Of a stretch of 8,294 nt of DNA, positions 1 to 8,294 are shown one piece after another. The notes beneath the pieces were generated by a model that had not been told where the DNA came from, did not search any database, and was given only the letters and a program-made list of their open reading frames with translations. Within the stretch, counting starts at the first letter, position 1. Each line of letters begins with the position of its first letter. Origin of the DNA: Octopus sinensis (lineage: Eukaryota); contig NW_021828473.1 in NCBI RefSeq assembly GCF_006345805.1, positions 1 to 8,294 on the forward strand, read 5' to 3'. A program made the translations under genes and the position numbers.

Positions 1-2160
1 TACAGCATTCAGGTTTGTTTTTGACAACATATTTATCCTCTTCTTGACATTCTCCAATATGGAGTCCATAACTTTATTCTTGAGAACATTACTTCCGCCA
101 TCTTCAAGTACACCCAAGTAGCGATATCCGTTGATTCCATCGACAGTCTCACAGCATGATAAAGATTCCACATTAGATGCTGATTTTTCGGAATTCATCT
201 CTAGGCCGACACTTTTAAAAAATCCATTAACAGCCTCCATCATTTTGACTAACACATCTTCTTTGAGGGCAACTATTTTCAGATCGTCAATAAAGAAGAA
301 ATGATTGGTGGAGTATGTCAACATATTGGGATCTTCCCGACTAATTTCGAGTTTGGGAAACATGGAGTTAAGCATCCTGCTTAGGGGATCCATCGCCATA
401 ACGAATAGCAGCGGGGGACAATGAATCTCCTTGGAGTATTCCCCGGCTTAACTTTACTTTCCCAATTCTTTTCCCATCGATATGTAAGTTTACTGTCCAC
501 TTCTTGACTATGTTCTTTACAAAGCTGACAATCCAATGTGGTATTCCAGAGCAATCCAATACGTGGAACAAGAACTCGTGATCAACTGAGTCAAATGCCT
601 TCTTCACATCGACCCAAGCAGAATAGAGGCCATTTCCATACTCTTTATTTAAGCATTGGTTAATGAGGGCTTGCTCTTGGGCGCTTGACATTGCTTCCTC
701 GTCCCAAGCTGATTATCTGCGATTAAGCCAAATGCCTCGATGAAATCGGCCAGTTTGGCATTAACACATTTGGTGACAAGTTTATACAAAGTTGGCATAC
801 ACGTTATAGGGCGTAAGTCCTTCGGGGTCTCACACTCACTTTTTTAGGGATCAAGTAAGTTACGCCAGTGTAAAACCAGCTATCAGGCGTGTACTCTCCA
901 TTAATTATTCGGACTATCTCTTTACACAGAAACCCATGCAAAGAATCCATCTTCTTTAAGAAAAAGTTATACGTTCCATCGCATCCGCATGCCTTCCAGT
1001 CAGGTGCATATTTGAGCATATCCATAATAAATCACTTGTGAATTGAGGTCGCATGGTTTCACCGCCAGTACACCTCACACCCACAAAATCATAAACTACG
1101 GGCCCCATATTTTTCTTGCTCCAGACATCTTCCCAAAATGATAAGCACTCACCATCACCAAACCCATACAGGGTGGCTTCGTTGCTCGAAGATAAGTTTC
1201 GATAAAATCTTCTGCGGTTTAATTCAAAACACGCATTGTCTTTCCGGAAATTTTTCCTCGAGGAATGGATAGATATCTGTTTCTTTTTGATTCTAATTAG
1301 ATCATTCAATAGAGTCTCAATTCTGGTTAGCTCCCCTTCTTAGACTTCTTATATCCGTAGCGGCAGAGAAACATCCATTGCCTTTTGCTTTTCTGCCTGA
1401 GGCAAGGTTTGTTTGGAGAAGGAACGAACTGTGTCAATTTCATCTGCTAATTTAGAGATTTTTCTTTCCGTGTTTTCCAACCATGTGCTCTGTGGTCTGG
1501 CTCTCGTAGTTAAGGCCAAATAAGCACACTGTGCAGCATATAGAATATCGGTAATTTGATTAATATCTTGGGGCGGATCATCTTTTGTAATATGATAAAT
1601 TGCAGAATTTAATCCAGCCAGGATATCAGTTTTTACCATCCTTCGTTGCACCTTTGGAGTTGGCTTTCGAGAGTCTCTCTGAATAGACTGAACTTTCCCA
1701 ATTTGGAATTTGAGTTCCTCTAGGCAATTTCTGAAACTGGAAATTTCTACGTCCACATCATCTTGCACTCTGGAAGAGTCGCATCTCCCTTGCACATTGT
1801 TATTCCGTCTAGCCATGCTCTTTAGTTGGCATAAACTGGAGCACTTTGCCGAGTACTTCTCATTGAACTTCTCCAGGACAAGGTTCCAACCACCTCTTGG
1901 CATCCTTCCAAGTCTTTGCTTCGCGCAAGGGCAATCTGAGACACCCATTCGCCTTCAGAGACACCATTGACATTTCCGATGATCGCAGAAAGAGAATGCA
2001 AGTTAGTTTTGGCAGCATCACCAACAAGATCTTCTTTAACACCATTAGCTCTTGTGGCATTGTGAGGTCCCATAGGCGACGGTCCTGTCTTTTTTAAGTT
2101 CTTTTTATTTGCAGGAAGGCCCGTAGGTTTCGTTTTCCTTAACTGCTTGGAAACGTACAT
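1..2160 (-). pseudogene. Reverse transcriptase polyprotein ORF interrupted by about 7 single-base indels
   Basis: Hand-joined frames give WKACGCDGTYNFFLKK, TYLIPKK/SECETPKDLRPITCMPTLYKLVT, NQLGTRKQCQ(G)AQEQALIN, WVDVKKAFDSVDH, RGILQGDSLSP/LLFVMAMDPL, catalytic NHFFFIDDLK (~280-306), GLEMNSEKS, GYRYLGVLED and KTNLNAV at the window edge. First ATG is at 2160. Frame breaks are near 1925, 1370, 1335, 1030, 843, 684 and 415. Confidence 0.9.
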
Positions 2161-2196
2161 GCACACACCACAACAACAATCCGTTTTTGTGACCAA
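1..2196 (-). mobile_element. R4/Dong-like (RLE-type) non-LTR retrotransposon, 5' part; continues past the window start
   Basis: Minus-strand ORF pieces join into one RT polyprotein (next feature). Composition switches from AT-rich HPRT 3' flank to mixed sequence at ~2197, which I take as the approximate 5' end. The 3' end, endonuclease and TSD lie outside the window, so the clade call rests on RT motif style only. Confidence 0.8.
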
Positions 2197-2241: not shown

Positions 2242-3064
2242 TTATCCAAAATAGTCAATTCCTGCCTGATTGATGAGTGCAATGTGCTAGAGAGTGAGCC
2301 AAACAAACAAACAGGGACATCCCTGAACTCCTGGTTGTAGTCAAACCCCATCCCCACGATGAATCTGTCAGGAATACTGAACCCCACGACTATATATAGT
2401 CCAATAGTAGTACAGTCTGCAGGCATCGTCGGCTTGGCCAGTCGTTTAGAAATAAAAAAGGCGGTTTTGACAGAGAGGGGATCATACTCGGCCAGAACCT
2501 CCTTTAGCTTGGTTATAGTCCTCCCAGTATCCACAATGTCTTCAAGAATAAGAACATTCTAATTAATAATAATTTATATTTAATTAATTATTATTAAAAT
2601 AATAATTTACATTCTGGCGAACACAGGATAACACCTGGGGGGAGAATACACTCACACTTCCGGTCGACTGGTCGTTCTGGTGGTAACATTTGTGATTAAA
2701 CCAGATAACTGGCAGTCCTGATGAATTCCAAATGGAACCTCACATAGGATTCCTTCGAAGAGGAGAGATTGAGACGTTCCATAGCCTCAGTGACCTTCAC
2801 AGTGAACTTGAATGCCCCTTTGAGAACACAGAGGAGAATGAGGGACTGTCCTTTATATATATTCCATATTTCATTGCTCATTCATTCTCATTATTATCCT
2901 ACTGCATTAGTAGTGCTGTGTGCCTGTCCACTGCCTCCTCCTGTGGAATTAAAATGTCGTCTATGAAGGGGCGGTAGAATTCGGGCAATTCGAATTGGTC
3001 CGCGTTATTTCGCTCGTGGTCGTCAGGTATCTGTTTGTCACGTGCTAACACTAACCGTTATCAT
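2242..3064 (-). CDS. HPRT: Hypoxanthine-guanine phosphoribosyltransferase, 7 exons, with an apparent frameshift at the start of exon 3 (damaged copy or assembly error)
   Basis: Exons (minus): 3064-3056, 3030-2924, 2898-2702, 2676-2611, 2558-2414, 2389-2313, 2286-2242. Spliced protein: MIT|IPDDHERNNADQFELPEFYRPFIDDILIPQEEAVDR|..MSNEIWNIYKGQSLILLCVLKGAFKF..EFIRTASYL|NDQSTG..RQN|NVLILEDIVDTGRT..PADF|VGFSIPDRFIVGMGFDYNQEFRDVP|HIALINQAGIDYFG*. LEDIVDTGRT is the PRPP-binding motif. Exon lengths sum to 646 nt, which is not a multiple of 3. Confidence 0.93.
2287..2312 (-). other. HPRT intron 6, 26 nt, GT-AG
   Basis: GTTTGTTTGTTTGGCTCACTCTCTAG; removal joins FRDVP|HIALI, equivalent to human FRDLN|HVCVI. 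Confidence 0.85.
2390..2413 (-). other. HPRT intron 5, 24 nt, GT-AG, in frame and stop-free
   Basis: GTACTACTATTGGACTATATATAG; removal restores D-F-V-G-F (phase 1) and yields a following exon of 77 nt, the size of human exon 8. Confidence 0.85.
2559..2610 (-). other. HPRT intron 4, 52 nt, AT-rich, GT-AG
   Basis: GTAAATT...TTAATTAG, 50 of 52 nt A/T. It follows a 66-nt exon (human exon 4 size) and precedes NVLILED. Confidence 0.88.
2677..2701 (-). other. HPRT intron 3, 25 nt, GT-AG
   Basis: GTTTAATCACAAATGTTACCACCAG; joins ASYL|NDQSTG, equivalent to human KSYC|NDQSTG. Confidence 0.9.
2899..2923 (-). other. HPRT intron 2, 25 nt, non-canonical GC-AG
   Basis: GAC AG|GCACACAGCACTACTAATGCAGTAG|G. 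The donor falls at the conserved D-R phase-2 position after a 107-nt exon (human exon 2 size). The acceptor is ambiguous: CAG at 2902, TAG at 2899 or GAG at 2877. Confidence 0.7.
3031..3055 (-). other. HPRT intron 1, 25 nt, GT-AG
   Basis: ATG ATA ACG|GTTAGTGTTAGCACGTGACAAACAG|ATA CCT GAC GAC; exon 2 starts IPDD, equivalent to human ISDD. Confidence 0.8.
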
Positions 3065-3113
3065 TCCACGTCACCAATTATATTTATTAGCATTTTTAAA
3101 TTTAAAAAATAAT

Positions 3114-3122
3114 AATTAATTT
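3114..3122. repeat. Target-site duplication, 3' copy (AATTAATTT on +)
   Basis: Identical to 5472-5480 and abuts or overlaps the poly(A) tail. The length is ambiguous (6-9 bp) because it overlaps the A-run. Confidence 0.7.
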
Positions 3123-3134
3123 TTTTTTTTTTTT
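3120..3134 (-). repeat. Poly(A) tail of the CRE element (T15 on +)
   Basis: 15 consecutive T, about 70 nt after the ORF stop, with AATAAA just upstream on the minus strand. Confidence 0.85.
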
Positions 3135-5471
3135 GTTAATTATTTTATTTAATAAGTTTTGAAAAGTTATTATATCGAAAGAGAAGAGATTGATTTGAGA
3201 AATCAATTGAGGAAGCCCGCTGCCTGTATGGAAAGCGAGTTCCCTCGGAGTATGGCTATTCCGATCCGTTGTCTTAGCCATACTCCTTCACGAGGATCAT
3301 TCTTCTTTGTGGCGAGCATTCTTCCGAGTTCGCGCAAGAACTCGGCAGTCGCTGGGCCAACAGCTCCTGATGACTCAGCCGCAACAGGGGTGAATCTGTA
3401 GCGGTCCCCGAGGAAGGAATATTTTTTGGTTTTAAGGTTTTCCGCGATTGAGGCAGCTGCTCCAGGTGTCTGAACCGATTTAAGGAGATTCGTGCTTGAG
3501 TAAGTATCGACGCAAGTTGCGTCCCAGACCAAAGATCGTCCGGAGTTGAAAGGGAAAAGAGTCATCCCGTCAGGTCTCTTCCATCACCTCGATCGAGACC
3601 CACTGGTTCAAGCTGTGCTGGGAAGCCTGCAGCCTTCAGAGCTCTGACGATCACGTCGTTCAGAGCGGCGTGACGTGGTCCTCTTCCGGCGGATCTCCTG
3701 CAGGATAGCGGGTGCAATCCCTTCGCATCGACCGTTTTCCCGCAGCGGCATCGGTGCTCCTGGCAAACGTCTAGTCCAAGTCTTTGTCCACTTCCAATCC
3801 TCAAAGAATCGTCGTCCAAAAAAGTCCCGAGATTTGGGCAAGGGATTGCACCAAGCCATGCTCCGCTCCCTCCACTTGAGGCTGACACCAGGCAAGCAAG
3901 ACGATGTTGATTTGCTTCTTTTTTAAGCCCTTCTGAAATTTTGGAGCAGACAATGTTATCCCAGTTCCTTTGTTTCGTTGTGTCTTCGGGGATTTTGAGT
4001 CCTGACCCGTTCCAATCCCGGCAAGCTTCATCAAATGACTCATTCCAGCGAAGTCCAATAGTGTGACGAAGGACTTGCCGTGTCAAATGGTTGCAGCTTG
4101 AGAGAGACGAAAGATATGCCGGGTACGCGACCTCCAGCGCCGATCTTAGACCGACACCCCCAAATCCAGAGGGAAGCTTACATTGCTTCCAACCGAGTTC
4201 GTCGAAGCGGACGTTGATTAGTGACTCAACAGTTTGTTTGAGAGATTTGTCTATCGAAAGTAGACTGTCGTCATGTTCGTGGCAGGGTGAACATCGCAGT
4301 AGGTATAGAAGCTTGGGTAGTCCGATGTTGTTTCTCATCAGGAAGAAGGATGTGTAAGAGTCGAGGCATGACAGTCTATTTGCGAGGCGAGATAATTCTT
4401 CATTTTTAGAAAGTAGATGGTTCCTGAGTTCGTCTTCACTGAGTGGACATCCAAGGAAATATAGTTTATCAACTGGCACAGTCGGGATCCCGGGAAGCAG
4501 TTCGTTGAAAAACTCCTTGATAGAGAGAAAGTCGGTGTTTGAGTATGAGACATTTATTAACTCTGATTTGTTAATATTGATGTCCAATCCCAAGTGTTTT
4601 AATGCGGGAAGTGCTTGACGTAAAGAGTTGTATGTTTCCTCGAATGATCCTCCAATTGTGGCATCGTCGAGATACCAGAGATTTAGTTGTGCGTCAATTG
4701 ATCTCACAACATCATCAATTGTCAGGGCAAATAAGAGGGGTCCGAGCGGATCTCCCTGCTGGACACCAGTTTTTGATTTAATGATTTCATCATCAAAAAC
4801 CAGAGACGTATCTTCTCCGTATGACAATTTAACAAGAGGGAAAAGCATGGGAGCCCTCTTCCAACACGTTTCCATAATGGAGTCTCTTCTGAGAGAATTG
4901 AATGCATTGGTTATGTCCAATTTGATTCCAATGCATTCGTTTGCAGTATTCTTCTGTGTGAAGAAACGCCTTGCTGCATGAACCGCTGCCTCACATCCGT
5001 TCTGGATACTAACACCCATTTGTTCTGGGAAGAACTCCGCACCGAGTGGGCGGCTCACGAGGGTCGAAGCAATCTTCGCTGCGAGTCTTCTGAAATAATT
5101 TCCGACCGCAATGGGGCGGATTCCTCCGTTGGGTTTTTTGAACGCGAGTAGCCTTGCGGAGAAGAGCAATTCTCTGGCATACTCCGGGATGTCGCCATTC
5201 ACCATTTTCCTTATTAGGTCCGTGATCGATTTAACAAGACAGCGTCCTGCTTCCGAGGTGTAGGTGGACGTTAGGTCTTTGATATGGCCGGGGCGTAACC
5301 CATCCAAGCCTCCGCTGCTGCTAGCGGCAAAAGAAGCGATTCCGTGTCGCACTTCTGATTCGGTAATCATAATCTCTTGAGTTCCTTCAGGATTCGAGAA
5401 CTTTACATAATCACTCGGTGCACTTGGGTGCTTCTGAATTAAGGTATTCAGGACCTCGGGGGTGCTATACA
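3123..5471 (-). mobile_element. 5'-truncated CRE-clade non-LTR retrotransposon (RT plus restriction-like endonuclease)
   Basis: Bounded by a 9-bp direct repeat and a poly(A) tail. The reading frame is open right up to the 5' junction with no 5' UTR or N-terminal zinc fingers. It has CRE-style motifs (IQKHP, SGGLDGLRPGH, IRPIAVGNYFRRLAAK, QMGVSIQNGCEAAVHAAR). Confidence 0.88.
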
Positions 5472-5472
5472 A
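3203..5472 (-). CDS. RT / zinc-knuckle / RLE polyprotein with one frameshift at ~3578
   Basis: RT motifs KLDITNAFNSL, GVQQGDPLGPLLF, LWYLDD, GLDININKSE and FLGCPL; GFGGVGLR thumb region; CRCG..HPLSC knuckle; RHAALND. Adding one A to GGAAGAGA gives DGKRPDGMTL and joins ORF 3203-3565 (WDATCVDT, AENLKTKKY), the PD..D RLE catalytic core. The TTG start of the ORF track straddles the TSD; the first ATG is at 5370. Confidence 0.9.
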
Positions 5473-5480
5473 ATTAATTT
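5472..5480. repeat. Target-site duplication, 5' copy (AATTAATTT on +)
   Basis: Identical to 3114-3122 and lies exactly where coding-like sequence ends. Confidence 0.7.
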
Positions 5481-5488
5481 AAAAAAAG

Positions 5489-5518
5489 TTTTGACGTGGT
5501 GCTTTCCCGCGTCCAAAA
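5489..5518. promoter_or_regulatory. GC-rich imperfect palindrome containing TGACGTGG (bZIP-type) and TTTCCCGC (E2F-type) motifs; candidate displaced HPRT upstream element
   Basis: TTTTGACGTGG-TGCTTTC-CCGCGTC-C-AAAA in otherwise AT-rich DNA. In the reconstructed empty site it lies about 60-90 nt upstream of the HPRT ATG. Function is inferred only. Confidence 0.35.
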
Positions 5519-5549
5519 ATGTCACTAAAAATGCCTGGAGTTATATATA

Positions 5550-6100
5550 CAGTGAACAACAATAAAAACTGAACATGCTTTTTCTTATAAATTTACAATG
5601 AAAGATATTGCAAATATGGTTCAAATTTATTTTTAACATGGATCAAAGTATTTTAAATTTTTTAGTGTTTTTAATAAACCAAAATTCAAAACCAGAACAA
5701 ACTGAACAAATTTAAAAATTAAACACTTAAGCATGTTAATATCATCTATATTTTTTAATTTTATAATATTTATCCATAAATCTTTTTAAAATATTGAGAA
5801 TAAAGCAAAAACCGATTTTTTAAGACAAAAAATTCCGGACAAATGTCAAAAAATAAAATATCAGTAAGGAATATGCTTTCCTCTCGATTTATATAACTCT
5901 AAACTACGAGTTTTCATCGAATTTATTAATTTTCGAATAAAATCAGTTGGAATTTTATTCCAAATTTCTAATATTTTATCCTTTTGTTGATGTTTATTTT
6001 TGGTCGAGAATCACCAAAAGATTCCTCAGGACGATAATTATCAGAAGCTATTTAAATAAGTGTTCAACAAACAAAAAAGTCGGGTCTGGTTGACCATCGT
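5550..6100 (-). mobile_element. Tc1/mariner DNA transposon remnant (one terminus plus transposase C-terminus)
   Basis: Terminus TATATATA|CAGTGAACAACAATAAAAACTGAACA has the TA target plus CAGTG start typical of Tc1-like TIRs. AAACTGAACA is directly repeated at 5566-5575 and 5699-5708. The second TIR was not found, so the right boundary is approximate. Confidence 0.7.
5861..6100 (-). pseudogene. Degenerate Tc1-family transposase C-terminus
   Basis: 5861-5983 reads KDKILEIWNKIPTDFIRKLINSMKTRSLELYKSRGKHIPY*, matching the Tc1 C-terminal pattern W..I....I..L..SM..R...(V)I...G....Y*. About 100 nt upstream, WSTRPDF..VEHLF weakly resembles WPxxSPDLNPIEHLW (frameshifted). Confidence 0.7.
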
Positions 6101-6231
6101 TGCTCAATCGTCAATAAATATTTTAAATTAAAGAGGCTTGAAGTGAGTATGTCAATTTCAACTGTTTTAAATTTGCCAAAACATTTACAAAAAAGAATGG
6201 AAATCAGTAACAACTCAAAAAATAAGAATAA

Positions 6232-7799
6232 TTATTTTCCATCAATTAGTTTGAGAACTCTGCCAAAGGCAATAGTCCTGCCCTCATCCCTGAGAATAAT
6301 CCTCCCCAGAATGGGCAGGTCGGCAGCCACGGCCACACAGATGGGCTCCTCCACAGCCAAGACCACCTCACATCGACTGTCCGTCCTCAGGAAACGAGGA
6401 TTCCTCACCTTCTCCTCCCCCATCTCCTGAGTACTCACCAGCCGTCGGAATGTCACCTGGTGAGTCACGTGGTGGATGTGCATCATGGCGGGAAAACCAG
6501 CACAAATTATATTCGACAGGTCCATTGTCACTATCTACACACTCTAATTGACACTACACCTCCACTTTGAAGTTCTTGGCCATTTTGACTGGATGTTCGG
6601 GGGGACACATCACAGAGCCCACTGAGATCTCCTAAATCACGTTTTTTAGTCACAACAAACATCTTCTGAGGCTCCCAGGATTCTCAGACGGATATTATAG
6701 CCTGGACTCGACTGCTCGACCTCAATCTCGTCCACCATCACTTGGGAGACCGTGACAGTCACCTTATTAAATTAAATATTAATTTTAATTAATTTTAATT
6801 ATTATTATCAATATATTAATAATATACTTTGGCGGGAAGAATCATTAGTTTTTGTCCTGTGGTGACAGTCCCACACTCCAGTTTGCCAAAAACCATTGTC
6901 CCGATTATTATTGCCTTGTCGGCCACCAAAAACCTGACTGGGTGGTCAGGCCTTCGATCAATTGGCTCCAGACTGTCCAACAGACCCAGAAAAGTCCACT
7001 TTCTTTGCATTACTCGAGCAATCAGACCTAAACCAGGGACACACAGCCACAGGAGGCATTTCCTTAAGGAAAGACCCGTCAAACCCCGAGCAAGGCATAA
7101 TAAAGCACTCAGACTTGGAGAATCCCAACTGTTTCAAAAAGGGCGCCAATTTCGCGCCACAGAATTTAAACCTTTGGCGGGAAAAGTGTGAAATTACCTT
7201 TGTTCAGCCCAGGTGACAGAGGGGTCATCCATTTTATTAATAAGGACAATAAGATATTTAATGCCAGAAGCGCGGGCAATGATGGCATGTTCCCGCGTCT
7301 GCCCGCCCTTGTCAAAGCCTGCCTCGAACTCCCCCGCCCTGGCCGAGATGACGAGTACTGCCACGTCTGCCTGGACCACCCCGTTGATCATGTTGGGGAC
7401 ATATGCCTTGTGGCCTGGAGCGTCCAATATAGTCACGTGCTTCTTGGGGGTTTTGAAGTAGGCACACCCCACTTCCACTGTCTTGCCTTTTTCCCGCTCT
7501 TCCGGGTTGGTGTCGAGAGCATAGGAGAGGTACCTCACACATTACAGTTGGGAGTACCACGACTCACGGTTTAGTTCCCGCGCTTCTGCCTCGTACTTCT
7601 CCAATGTTCTCTTGCTTATCATTCCTGTTAGGAGCATTAGGTTCCCGCCAATTGTCGATTTTCCCGCGTCCACGTGGCCAATGAAGATTATGTTTATGTT
7701 ATCTTTTTTGCCCAAATCGGCTGTCTCTTCATTTGGTGGTGCTGGTTGATTATATATTAATATTTTACTGTCCTCGTGCTCCAGATCATACCCCACCAT
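6232..7799 (-). CDS. GSPT1: Eukaryotic peptide chain release factor 3 (eRF3/Sup35/GSPT), 8 exons, 448 aa
   Basis: Exons (minus): 7799-7769, 7741-7558, 7533-7198, 7171-7028, 7002-6828, 6762-6661, 6631-6560, 6534-6232; total 1347 nt, all phases compatible. Motifs: FIGHVDAGKSTIGG, ESWYLSYALDTNPEEREKGKTVEVG, DAPGHKAYVPNMI, GQTREH, INKMDD and the C-terminal GRIILRDEGRTIAFGRVLK. These are eRF3-type rather than EF1A or HBS1. Confidence 0.95.
6535..6559 (-). other. eRF3 intron 7, 25 nt, GT-AG
   Basis: GTGTAGTGTCAATTAGAGTGTGTAG; joins FKVE|IVTMDLSNIIC with the same spacing as human FDAQIVIIEHKSIIC. Confidence 0.85.
6632..6660 (-). other. eRF3 intron 6, 29 nt, GT-AG
   Basis: GTTTGTTGTGACTAAAAAACGTGATTTAG; joins GASED|EISVG and removes an in-frame TAA. 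Confidence 0.85.
6763..6827 (-). other. eRF3 intron 5, 65 nt, AT-rich, GT-AG
   Basis: GTATATT...TTAATAAG, 62 of 65 nt A/T; joins ILPAK|VTVTV. Confidence 0.88.
7003..7027 (-). other. eRF3 intron 4, 25 nt, GT-AG
   Basis: GTCTGATTGCTCGAGTAATGCAAAG; joins CPWFR|KWTFLGLLDSL and reconciles two ORF-track frames. Confidence 0.88.
7172..7197 (-). other. eRF3 intron 3, 26 nt, GT-AG
   Basis: GTAATTTCACACTTTTCCCGCCAAAG; joins WAEQR|FKFCGAKLAPFLK. Confidence 0.88.
7534..7557 (-). other. eRF3 intron 2, 24 nt, GT-AG with a GAG acceptor and an in-frame stop
   Basis: GTACTCCCAACTGTAATGTGTGAG; removal restores ESWYLSYALD. Confidence 0.9.
7742..7768 (-). other. eRF3 intron 1 (probable), 27 nt, GT-AG, in frame and stop-free
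   Basis: GTAAAATATTAATATATAATCAACCAG is an AT-rich island in GC-richer coding sequence and has the modal intron size. It lies in a non-conserved N-terminus, so homology cannot confirm it. Confidence 0.65.
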
Positions 7800-7878
7800 G
7801 TTGTATATTTATTTAATTTTTATATTAATTTAATTTGTTAAGTTTATTAAATATTATTTATAATATGTTAGTGGTGGT

Positions 7879-8007
7879 CTCGTGTCGTTCGTCACATCGC
7901 CTCACTATAGTGTATTCTGTTTTCTCAGTGTTAATTTTTAGGAGTGATTTTTCAAAAGTGTTGGCCAATTTGTCCATAGTACCTTCTAGTTGGCGGAACG
8001 ACACGAG
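7879..8007. repeat. Perfect 12-bp inverted repeat (7879-7890 / 7996-8007) flanking the inverted segment
   Basis: CTCGTGTCGTTC at 7879-7890 is the exact reverse complement of GAACGACACGAG at 7996-8007; both encode ERHE. Confidence 0.92.
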
Positions 8008-8294
8008 GAAAAATGGAGGCATACAAAGAAACTTGCTCAAAAGATTAAACAACATATGGTTGAGAGGCAAACAAATTTCTGCGTCTCTAAAAATCAAACT
8101 TTACAATATGTTCGTAAAACCAATCCTACTATACAACTCCTCCTCTTGGGCACTCAGGAAATGGAAAATCTCAATTCCTTCCACAGAATGCAGCTGAAAT
8201 ACATCCTAGGAATATTTTGGCCAAAACGGATTTCAAACAAGTGTTCTATCTCCTATATCGAAAGATTATTTGTTCAAGGCCCGACGAGAACATA
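7879..8294 (+). mobile_element. Decayed RTE-like LINE fragment with an inverted 5' segment; continues past the window end
   Basis: Minus 7995-7879 encodes RQLEGTMDKLANTFEKSLLKINTEKTEYTIVRRCDERHE (late RT palm). Plus from 7996 encodes ERHEEKWRHTKKL, then after deletions or frameshifts KRLNNIW..LKIKLYNMFVKPILLYNSSSWAL and NSFHRMQLKYILGIFWPKRISNK (post-RT thumb region). Confidence 0.8.

Follow-up and report, generated by a model that had tools for sequence, protein, structure and literature searches.

Among animals, introns shorter than 30 nucleotides (nt) have been reported in Dicyema japonicum and in myxobolid myxozoans (Hadjez 2026, PMC13644364). Sixteen Dicyema introns measured 26.2 +/- 1.9 nt and occupied conserved positions (Aruga 2007, PMC2222250); this work was extended to 40 genes by Ogino 2010, as that study is cited in PMC6543705, and the median intron of Dicyema sp. 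is 27 nt (Zverkov 2019, PMC6543705). The D. japonicum genome has 6.2 introns per gene, 49% repeats, many copies of open reading frame (ORF) 2 of long interspersed nuclear elements (LINEs) and a G+C (GC) content of 36.7% (Lu 2019, PMC6736024). In the splice-site logos only 'GTa' and 'AG' are left, along with weak A's that lie farther from the AG as intron length grows, and myxozoans possess a canonical U2 small nuclear RNA (snRNA) and U2AF; myxobolid median introns are 22-27 bp, the Henneguya genome has 29% GC, and transposable elements (TEs) are relatively few in myxozoans (PMC13644364). Ciliate introns measure about 25 nt in Paramecium and 15-16 nt in Stentor (PMC9505925, PMC2222250), and all snRNAs are present in Stentor (PMC9505925). 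Here we analyse an 8.3-kb window (8,294 nt of contig NW_021828473.1, deposited in the Octopus sinensis assembly GCF_006345805.1), in which two minus-strand housekeeping genes, eRF3/GSPT and HPRT, are found with retrotransposon remnants between and around them. Thirteen GT...AG segments interrupt the two genes; as judged from the DNA, they are mostly introns of 24-29 nt at ancient animal positions, the first eRF3 segment being a candidate only.

Results

Two housekeeping genes and their introns

Gene models were rebuilt from three-frame translations by splicing out the 13 GT...AG segments, after which both reading frames were uninterrupted.

7799-6232, minus strand: eRF3/GSPT gene; ATG at 7799, TAA at 6234-6232; 8 exons, 7 candidate introns
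7799-7769, 7741-7558, 7533-7198, 7171-7028, 7002-6828, 6762-6661, 6631-6560 and 6534-6232, minus strand: eRF3 exons, spliced ORF
3064-2242, minus strand: HPRT gene; ATG at 3064, TAA at 2244-2242; 7 exons, 6 introns
3064-3056, 3030-2903, 2876-2702, 2676-2611, 2558-2414, 2389-2313 and 2286-2242, minus strand: HPRT exons, spliced ORF

The spliced eRF3 protein has 448 amino acids (aa) and carries the Pfam domains GTP_EFTU, D2 and D3 (EF-Tu-type GTPase domain and domains 2 and 3); in protein searches it was 50-53% identical to metazoan eRF3A/GSPT1, with about 95% of its length covered. The spliced HPRT protein (214 aa, Pfam Pribosyltran, phosphoribosyltransferase) was 37-42% identical to most of its best animal HPRT matches, coverage being mostly above 90%. 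Metazoan proteins were numerous among the best homologs of both genes, and animal HPRTs were prominent among the best HPRT matches. Among the matches listed, all named eRF3 matches were metazoan, with molluscs and a brachiopod among the top-scoring ones; no cnidarian was present among the 120 best eRF3 matches listed. Both coding sequences are written in the standard code: they contain no in-frame TAA or TAG and end with TAA, which argues that no ciliate genetic code is in use.

The predicted introns are listed below in the order of transcription within each gene.

7768-7742, minus strand: eRF3 I1, 27 nt, GTAAAA...CCAG, phase 1; in frame and stop-free; candidate only
7557-7534, minus strand: eRF3 I2, 24 nt, GTACTC...TGAG, phase 2; in-frame TAA inside
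7197-7172, minus strand: eRF3 I3, 26 nt, GTAATT...AAAG, phase 2; pyrimidine run, unique among the eRF3 introns
7027-7003, minus strand: eRF3 I4, 25 nt, GTCTGA...AAAG, phase 2; one skipped AG
6827-6763, minus strand: eRF3 I5, 65 nt, GTATAT...TAAG, phase 0; GC 5%
6660-6632, minus strand: eRF3 I6, 29 nt, GTTTGT...TTAG, phase 0
6559-6535, minus strand: eRF3 I7, 25 nt, GTGTAG...GTAG, phase 0; three skipped AGs
3055-3031, minus strand: HPRT I1, 25 nt, GTTAGT...ACAG, phase 0; two skipped AGs; required to reach the ATG
2902-2877, minus strand: HPRT I2, 26 nt, GTAGGA...TGAG, phase 2; least certain junction of the set
2701-2677, minus strand: HPRT I3, 25 nt, GTTTAA...CCAG, phase 0
2610-2559, minus strand: HPRT I4, 52 nt, GTAAAT...TTAG, phase 0; GC 4%
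2413-2390, minus strand: HPRT I5, 24 nt, GTACTA...ATAG, phase 1; in frame and stop-free
2312-2287, minus strand: HPRT I6, 26 nt, GTTTGT...CTAG, phase 0; CTCAC and a pyrimidine run

All 13 segments begin with GT and end with AG; two measure 24 nt, four 25 nt, three 26 nt, and one each 27, 29, 52 and 65 nt. Retention of any one of 11 of them would introduce a premature stop. When the spliced proteins were aligned with 9-10 homologs each, the junctions were gap-free, except those of eRF3 I1 and HPRT I2. Each junction was compared with all ORF-preserving GT/GC-AG alternatives within +/-45 nt, the resulting protein being scored against a hidden Markov model (HMM) of the homologs. The modelled junction was the single best option for eRF3 I2-I7 and for HPRT I3-I6; the protein reads WY/LSYALDT across eRF3 I2, SYL/NDQSTG across HPRT I3 and RDVP/HIAL across HPRT I6 (a slash marks the junction). 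HPRT I5, one of the two stop-free segments, scored 190.5 spliced versus 177.6 unspliced, and its removal restored the conserved PD/FVGF motif. eRF3 I1, the other one, has a GC content of 0.19, a GTA donor and an acceptor AG that is the first to occur 19 nt or more away from that donor.

The eRF3 model is short at its N-terminus: about 22 residues precede the GTPase domain (window positions 7742-7799), and the PAM2/PABP-binding extension of the 500-630-aa homologs is lacking; further exons may lie upstream, beyond an AT-rich spacer. The first coding exon of HPRT consists of three codons only (MIT).

Intron positions shared with other animals

Exon-intron structures of orthologs were derived from genomic loci, for eRF3A in a scallop and a sponge, and for HPRT in a lamprey and the annelid Dimorphilus. 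Eleven of the 13 introns share both codon and phase with ortholog introns of 57-8929 bp. In eRF3, all six testable introns (I2-I7) coincide with scallop introns of 368-1714 bp, with a joint chance probability of about 4e-13; the counterparts of I2 and I3 measure 802 and 1714 bp, respectively. I4 to I7 additionally fall on sponge intron positions, whereas I2 and I3 are shared with the scallop but not with the sponge. In HPRT, five of six introns (I1, I3, I4, I5 and I6) coincide with lamprey introns of 302-8929 bp (chance about 2e-9), I1 corresponding to lamprey intron 1 (8929 bp) and I3 to an intron of 302 bp; I4 to I6 additionally occupy Dimorphilus positions. Since codon and phase are shared with long animal introns, these introns are orthologous to them: they are ancient and have become one to two orders of magnitude shorter. 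None of the 13 donors resembles ATATCC or GTATCC, as would be expected of a U12-type intron (consensus RTATCCTT donor, TCCTTAAC branch).

An earlier inspection of the letters alone (hereafter the sequence-only reading) had proposed that 11 of 13 introns of this window measure 24-29 nt, well below the usual animal minimum. The gene models and the orthologous positions bear out this micro-intron regime, and 12 of the 13 proposed lengths were recovered. The remaining one, a 25-nt GC-AG intron with donor GCACA (2923-2899) in HPRT, was not: its use leads to a TGA after 9 codons, and it is absent from the ORF-preserving options. It is replaced in our model by the 26-nt I2 (2902-2877), which is the sole ORF-preserving GT-AG option among short candidates and leaves a two-residue insertion relative to the homologs. 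The site at which lamprey and Dimorphilus carry this intron is contiguous coding sequence here (GAC AGG CAC); it reads GAC AG/GCACA, which probably drew attention to the GC donor. A 47-nt GC-AG intron at that conserved site (2923-2877) was also considered and rejected, as it lowers the HMM score by 7 bits and removes an invariant Arg.

A probable lower limit on intron length

All 13 introns (13/13) end at the first AG that lies 19 nt or more from the donor; with intron interiors shuffled, the joint probability of this was 0.013. The 52- and 65-nt introns, which have no internal AG, obey this rule as well. The internal AGs that are skipped would yield introns of 4-18 nt, and in eRF3 I7 the three of them would yield 6, 16 and 18 nt; the sequence-only reading had placed this intron (6535-6559) and HPRT I1 (3031-3055) at exactly these coordinates, with the same three and two skipped AGs. 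No intron falls in the 19-23 nt class, versus 35% of exonic GTs under the same rule (p=0.003), and 11/13 fall in the 24-29 nt class, versus 18% expected (p=4e-7). The 11 short introns measure 25.6 +/- 1.4 nt; over all 13 introns the median is 26.

This pattern points to a floor near 24 nt, with scanning for the 3' site, rather than to a measured 25 nt. The 52- and 65-nt introns lie at conserved positions and must be spliced, which speaks against a machinery tuned to 25 nt. The earlier proposal of a reduced spliceosome measuring about 25 nt thus gives way to a lower bound, which fits the lengths better. As to their composition, these two introns (2559-2610 and 6763-6827) are low-complexity, AATTAA-like sequences despite their conserved positions; they are closer to the intergenic spacers (23% GC; 5500-6000) than to the 24-29-nt introns.

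Splice signals and exonic decoys

The sequence-only reading had further held that there is almost no signal beyond GT and AG. Several of its component observations stand: donors are heterogeneous, none of the real ones being GTRAGT; acceptors include AAG (three) and GAG (two); and most introns lack a polypyrimidine tract, a clear run being seen in only 2/13 (eRF3 I3 and HPRT I6). G at +5, counted earlier in 4/13 introns, occurs in 5/13 in the present model. The general statement does not hold. The two pre-mRNAs contain 54 GT-N-AG segments of 24-29 nt: 11 real introns, 14 segments that overlap real introns and 29 that are fully exonic. These 29 decoys have the same dinucleotides and the same spacing, so GT and AG plus length cannot identify the sites. 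A or T is present at +3 in 9/11 real short introns versus 3/29 decoys (Fisher p=3.7e-5); counted over all introns, A occupies +3 in 7/13 and T in 4/13, and positions +4 to +6 and -3 show no consensus. In addition, the 20 nt that follow real donors (+3 to +22) are AT-rich compared with those that follow 110 exonic GTs (area under the curve, 0.92; p=3.6e-7). The GC content is 37% in short introns, 50% in exons and 4-5% in the two longer introns. Real donors match the canonical one only weakly: over nine positions, the mean match is 4.8 for real donors versus 3.6 for exonic GTs.

Three exonic GTGAGT hexamers (at 7567, 6438 and 2655) are not used as donors, and two of them open segments that could pass for introns.

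7567-7562, minus strand: exonic GTGAGT, unused as donor
6438-6415, minus strand: exonic decoy GTGAGT...GGGGAG, 24 nt, in frame, coding; best U1-consensus match in either gene (7/9)
2655-2635, minus strand: exonic decoy GTGAGTGTATTCTCCCCCCAG, 21 nt, in frame; canonical mini-intron look, but coding

The last of these, GTGAGT...CCCCCCAG with a pyrimidine run and a CAG, has the look of a textbook mini-intron, yet the HPRT residues that it encodes are conserved: when it is retained, the protein aligns nearly gap-free with the STGx(I/V)xV-xGG block in all homologs.

GTA accounts for 8/111 GTN trinucleotides in exons. Its depletion as an avoidance of cryptic donors was considered and rejected, as GTA is equally rare in the ORF of the neighbouring retrotransposon (7/76).

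A candidate branch adenosine was sought in the short introns. In 9/11 of them an A occupies position 17 or 18, counted from the 5' end, with a nominal p of about 0.04 that is uncorrected for multiple positions; the branch motif YTNAY is present in 4/11 short introns only, at no consistent position.

Retrotransposon context

Three retrotransposon-derived segments lie between and around the two genes.

3121-5472, minus strand: 5'-truncated non-LTR (long terminal repeat) retrotransposon copy with a reverse transcriptase (RT) ORF, a second ORF and an A15 tail
1-2196, minus strand: degraded, frameshifted RT remnant with an RVT_1 fragment at 368-691; abuts the HPRT 3' end
7835-8294, plus strand: short fragment resembling an RT C-terminus, just upstream of eRF3

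In the non-LTR copy, a 636-aa RT ORF (3562-5472, RVT_1) is followed by a 120-aa ORF (3203-3565) and by the A15 tail (3121-3135), whose end lies only some 57 nt before the HPRT start codon. Among named sequences, the RT is closest to 'uncharacterized' proteins of Octopus sinensis (44-53% identity) and to a SLACS-like element of a barnacle; the best unnamed match is from a Tara Oceans metagenome. The similarity to octopus proteins could hint at a cephalopod parasite as the source of the DNA, or at an exchange of TEs between host and parasite. TE-derived sequence accounts for well over one third of the window, whose GC content is 42%.

Discussion

Preferred explanation

We propose that these are ordinary U2-type introns, ancestral in animal eRF3 and HPRT, that have shrunk to near the spliceosome minimum in a compact, fast-evolving genome, most likely that of a dicyemid; we put the probability of this reading at roughly 0.85. 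Recognition would occur by intron definition with a conventional U2-type spliceosome, U1 and U6 pairing being presumably minimal. The branch adenosine would lie about 17-18 nt from the 5' end and 7-9 nt before the AG, and scanning that starts there would select the 3' AG, with no need for a polypyrimidine tract. The narrow lengths would then reflect an evolutionary pile-up against a steric floor, set by the minimum distance from 5' splice site to branch plus the minimum distance from branch to AG, with no active measurement of 25 nt; deletion bias in a compact parasite genome may have driven the pile-up.

Several observations weigh against this explanation or against parts of it. Every junction was deduced from frame and homology, and 13 introns are too few to define a logo. 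For eRF3 I1 the HMM scores were 602.8 spliced versus 603.1 unspliced, in a region where the N-terminus is unconserved and unalignable. HPRT I1 opens with a tandem GTTAG GTTAG, so that donors at 3055 and 3049 give in-frame alternatives of 25 and 19 nt; these have equal HMM scores and homology cannot separate them. For HPRT I2, a rival GC-AG junction (2905-2877, 29 nt) scores 2 bits higher than the modelled one, and the intron lies 7 codons downstream of the lamprey and Dimorphilus site, in the same phase, an offset that may reflect intron sliding, or loss and a nearby gain. eRF3 I3 lacks the A at 17-18, and the branch-point assignment is weak. With regard to the lineage, protein searches with eRF3, HPRT and the RT gave no match above 53% identity, and neither an exact look-up of an ORF of the window nor metagenome scans with the RT protein and with a 40-mer across an exon-intron junction yielded near-identical protein or DNA in the collections searched; the GC content of 42%, in a window that is rich in genes and TEs, is higher than the 36.7% of D. 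japonicum.

Alternative explanations

If the window came from a myxobolid myxozoan, a parasitic cnidarian, the same intron biology would have arisen in the other animals for which introns of less than 30 nt are known. The myxobolid medians of 22-27 bp and the signals reduced to 'GTa' (PMC13644364) agree with the present introns, and fast-evolving genes fit the identity of about 50% to other animals. We nevertheless consider this origin unlikely and favour a dicyemid on account of the length mode (25-26 nt, which matches the 26.2 +/- 1.9 nt of Dicyema, PMC2222250), the 6-7 introns per gene, the TE-rich context and a GC content well above the 29% of Henneguya; myxozoans have relatively few TEs, whereas well over one third of this window is RT-derived, a single window being weak evidence on a genome. 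The dicyemid is likewise favoured by the molluscs and brachiopod at the top of the eRF3 matches, with no cnidarian among the 120 best listed, and by the two introns (eRF3 I2 and I3) that are shared with the scallop and absent from the sponge. That the best named RT relatives are from Octopus, a member of the dicyemid host group, points the same way as weak evidence.

Two further readings would go beyond what is published, and we regard either of them as doubtful. In the first, the DNA came from an animal lineage for which introns of less than 30 nt are not yet known, so that they would have originated independently a third time; in the second, a truly 5'-anchored spacing mechanism is at work. 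The second would be built on the 24-nt floor, the rule of the first AG at least 19 nt away and the A at 17-18. Were it true, the 5' splice-site complex would position the branch and the 3' site, in place of recognition of a polypyrimidine tract by U2AF, and the spliceosome would read composition while ignoring canonical GTGAGT donors.

A ruler in the strict sense, in which a reduced spliceosome uses nothing in the sequence except a bare GT and a bare AG spaced about 25 nt apart, appears improbable. Such a device would account for the 11/13 introns that fall inside a 6-nt range, for the skipping of AGs that would give 18 nt or less and the lack of introns of 19-23 nt, and for donors unlike GTRAGT, ignored exonic GTGAGT and mostly missing pyrimidine tracts; the A at a fixed 17-18 nt from the 5' end (9/11) hints at 5'-anchored spacing, and the same trend is seen genome-wide in PMC13644364. 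However, 29 exonic and 14 overlapping segments of 24-29 nt go unused, so that a pure ruler would mis-splice about three times as often as it would splice correctly; real sites carry extra information (A/T at +3, AT-rich body), and the 52- and 65-nt introns at conserved positions must be removed as well. Furthermore, myxozoans with equally short introns have a canonical U2 snRNA and U2AF1/2 (PMC13644364), and Stentor retains all its snRNAs (PMC9505925). The window itself is silent on spliceosome composition: an Rfam scan of it for snRNAs gave a sub-threshold chance hit only, and it contains no splicing-factor gene.

Finally, it is hardly credible that the segments are not spliceosomal introns of an animal (that is, pseudogene frameshift insertions, assembly errors, ciliate-type eliminated sequences or ciliate tiny introns): two of them are in frame and stop-free and the junctions are read from the sequence alone, but all 13 are bounded by GT...AG and not by TA as ciliate eliminated sequences are, 11 lie exactly at intron positions of other animals, the conserved cores of the spliced proteins align without gaps, and the genes have TAA terminators, no in-frame TAA or TAG, and metazoan homologs.

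Significance

The regime of ultra-short introns is already published for dicyemids (2007, 2010, 2019, 2026) and lately for myxozoans, and the window reveals no new splicing system. The small additions made here are descriptive: the decoy census, the unused exonic GTGAGT hexamers, the first-AG rule (19 nt or more away), the empty 19-23-nt class and the 7-codon offset of HPRT I2. Ultra-short introns are a test of the minimum sequence and space that a spliceosome needs, and these two genes illustrate it with introns that span hundreds to thousands of bases elsewhere and about 25 nt here, at the same codons. They also bear on annotation: such genes will be broken by gene finders whose shortest permitted intron exceeds about 20 nt or whose donor models were trained on GTRAGT.

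Comparison with known systems

Like ciliate introns, those of the window have lengths pressed against a minimum, weak signals and AT-rich bodies, and their retention usually leads to a premature stop (11/13). They differ from them by residing in metazoan genes that use the standard code, at metazoan positions, and by the lack of a visible depletion of introns whose length is a multiple of three (3/13, two of them stop-free, with n=13). The genetic code, the metazoan homologs and the metazoan intron positions together rule out an origin in a ciliate or a nucleomorph.

With canonical metazoan U2-type introns they share the GT-AG termini, orthologous positions and phases, the logic of the first AG after the branch, and remnants of CTCAC or a pyrimidine run (eRF3 I3, HPRT I6). 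In contrast, they are two- to three-fold shorter than the usual animal minimum and lack the GTRAGT donor consensus; GTGAGT in exons is ignored, a polypyrimidine tract is usually lacking, and AAG and GAG acceptors are tolerated.

The myxobolids (Henneguya salminicola, Thelohanellus kitauei, Myxobolus spp.) resemble the window in their introns of less than 30 nt, reduced logos and conserved positions; they differ in having medians of 22-27 nt and AT-rich cnidarian genomes with relatively few TEs, whereas the window is TE-rich, has a higher GC content and gives no cnidarian signal. The likeness to dicyemids extends to the narrowly spread lengths with a mode of about 26 nt, the 6-7 introns per gene and the conserved positions, to a 5' splice site reduced to GTa and a 3' splice site reduced to AG, perhaps with weak A's at an approximately constant distance from the 5' end, and to standard-code metazoan genes encoding fast-evolving proteins in a LINE/RT-rich context (three LINE/RT remnants in this window). 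On this indirect evidence, the source of the window DNA is probably a dicyemid such as Dicyema.

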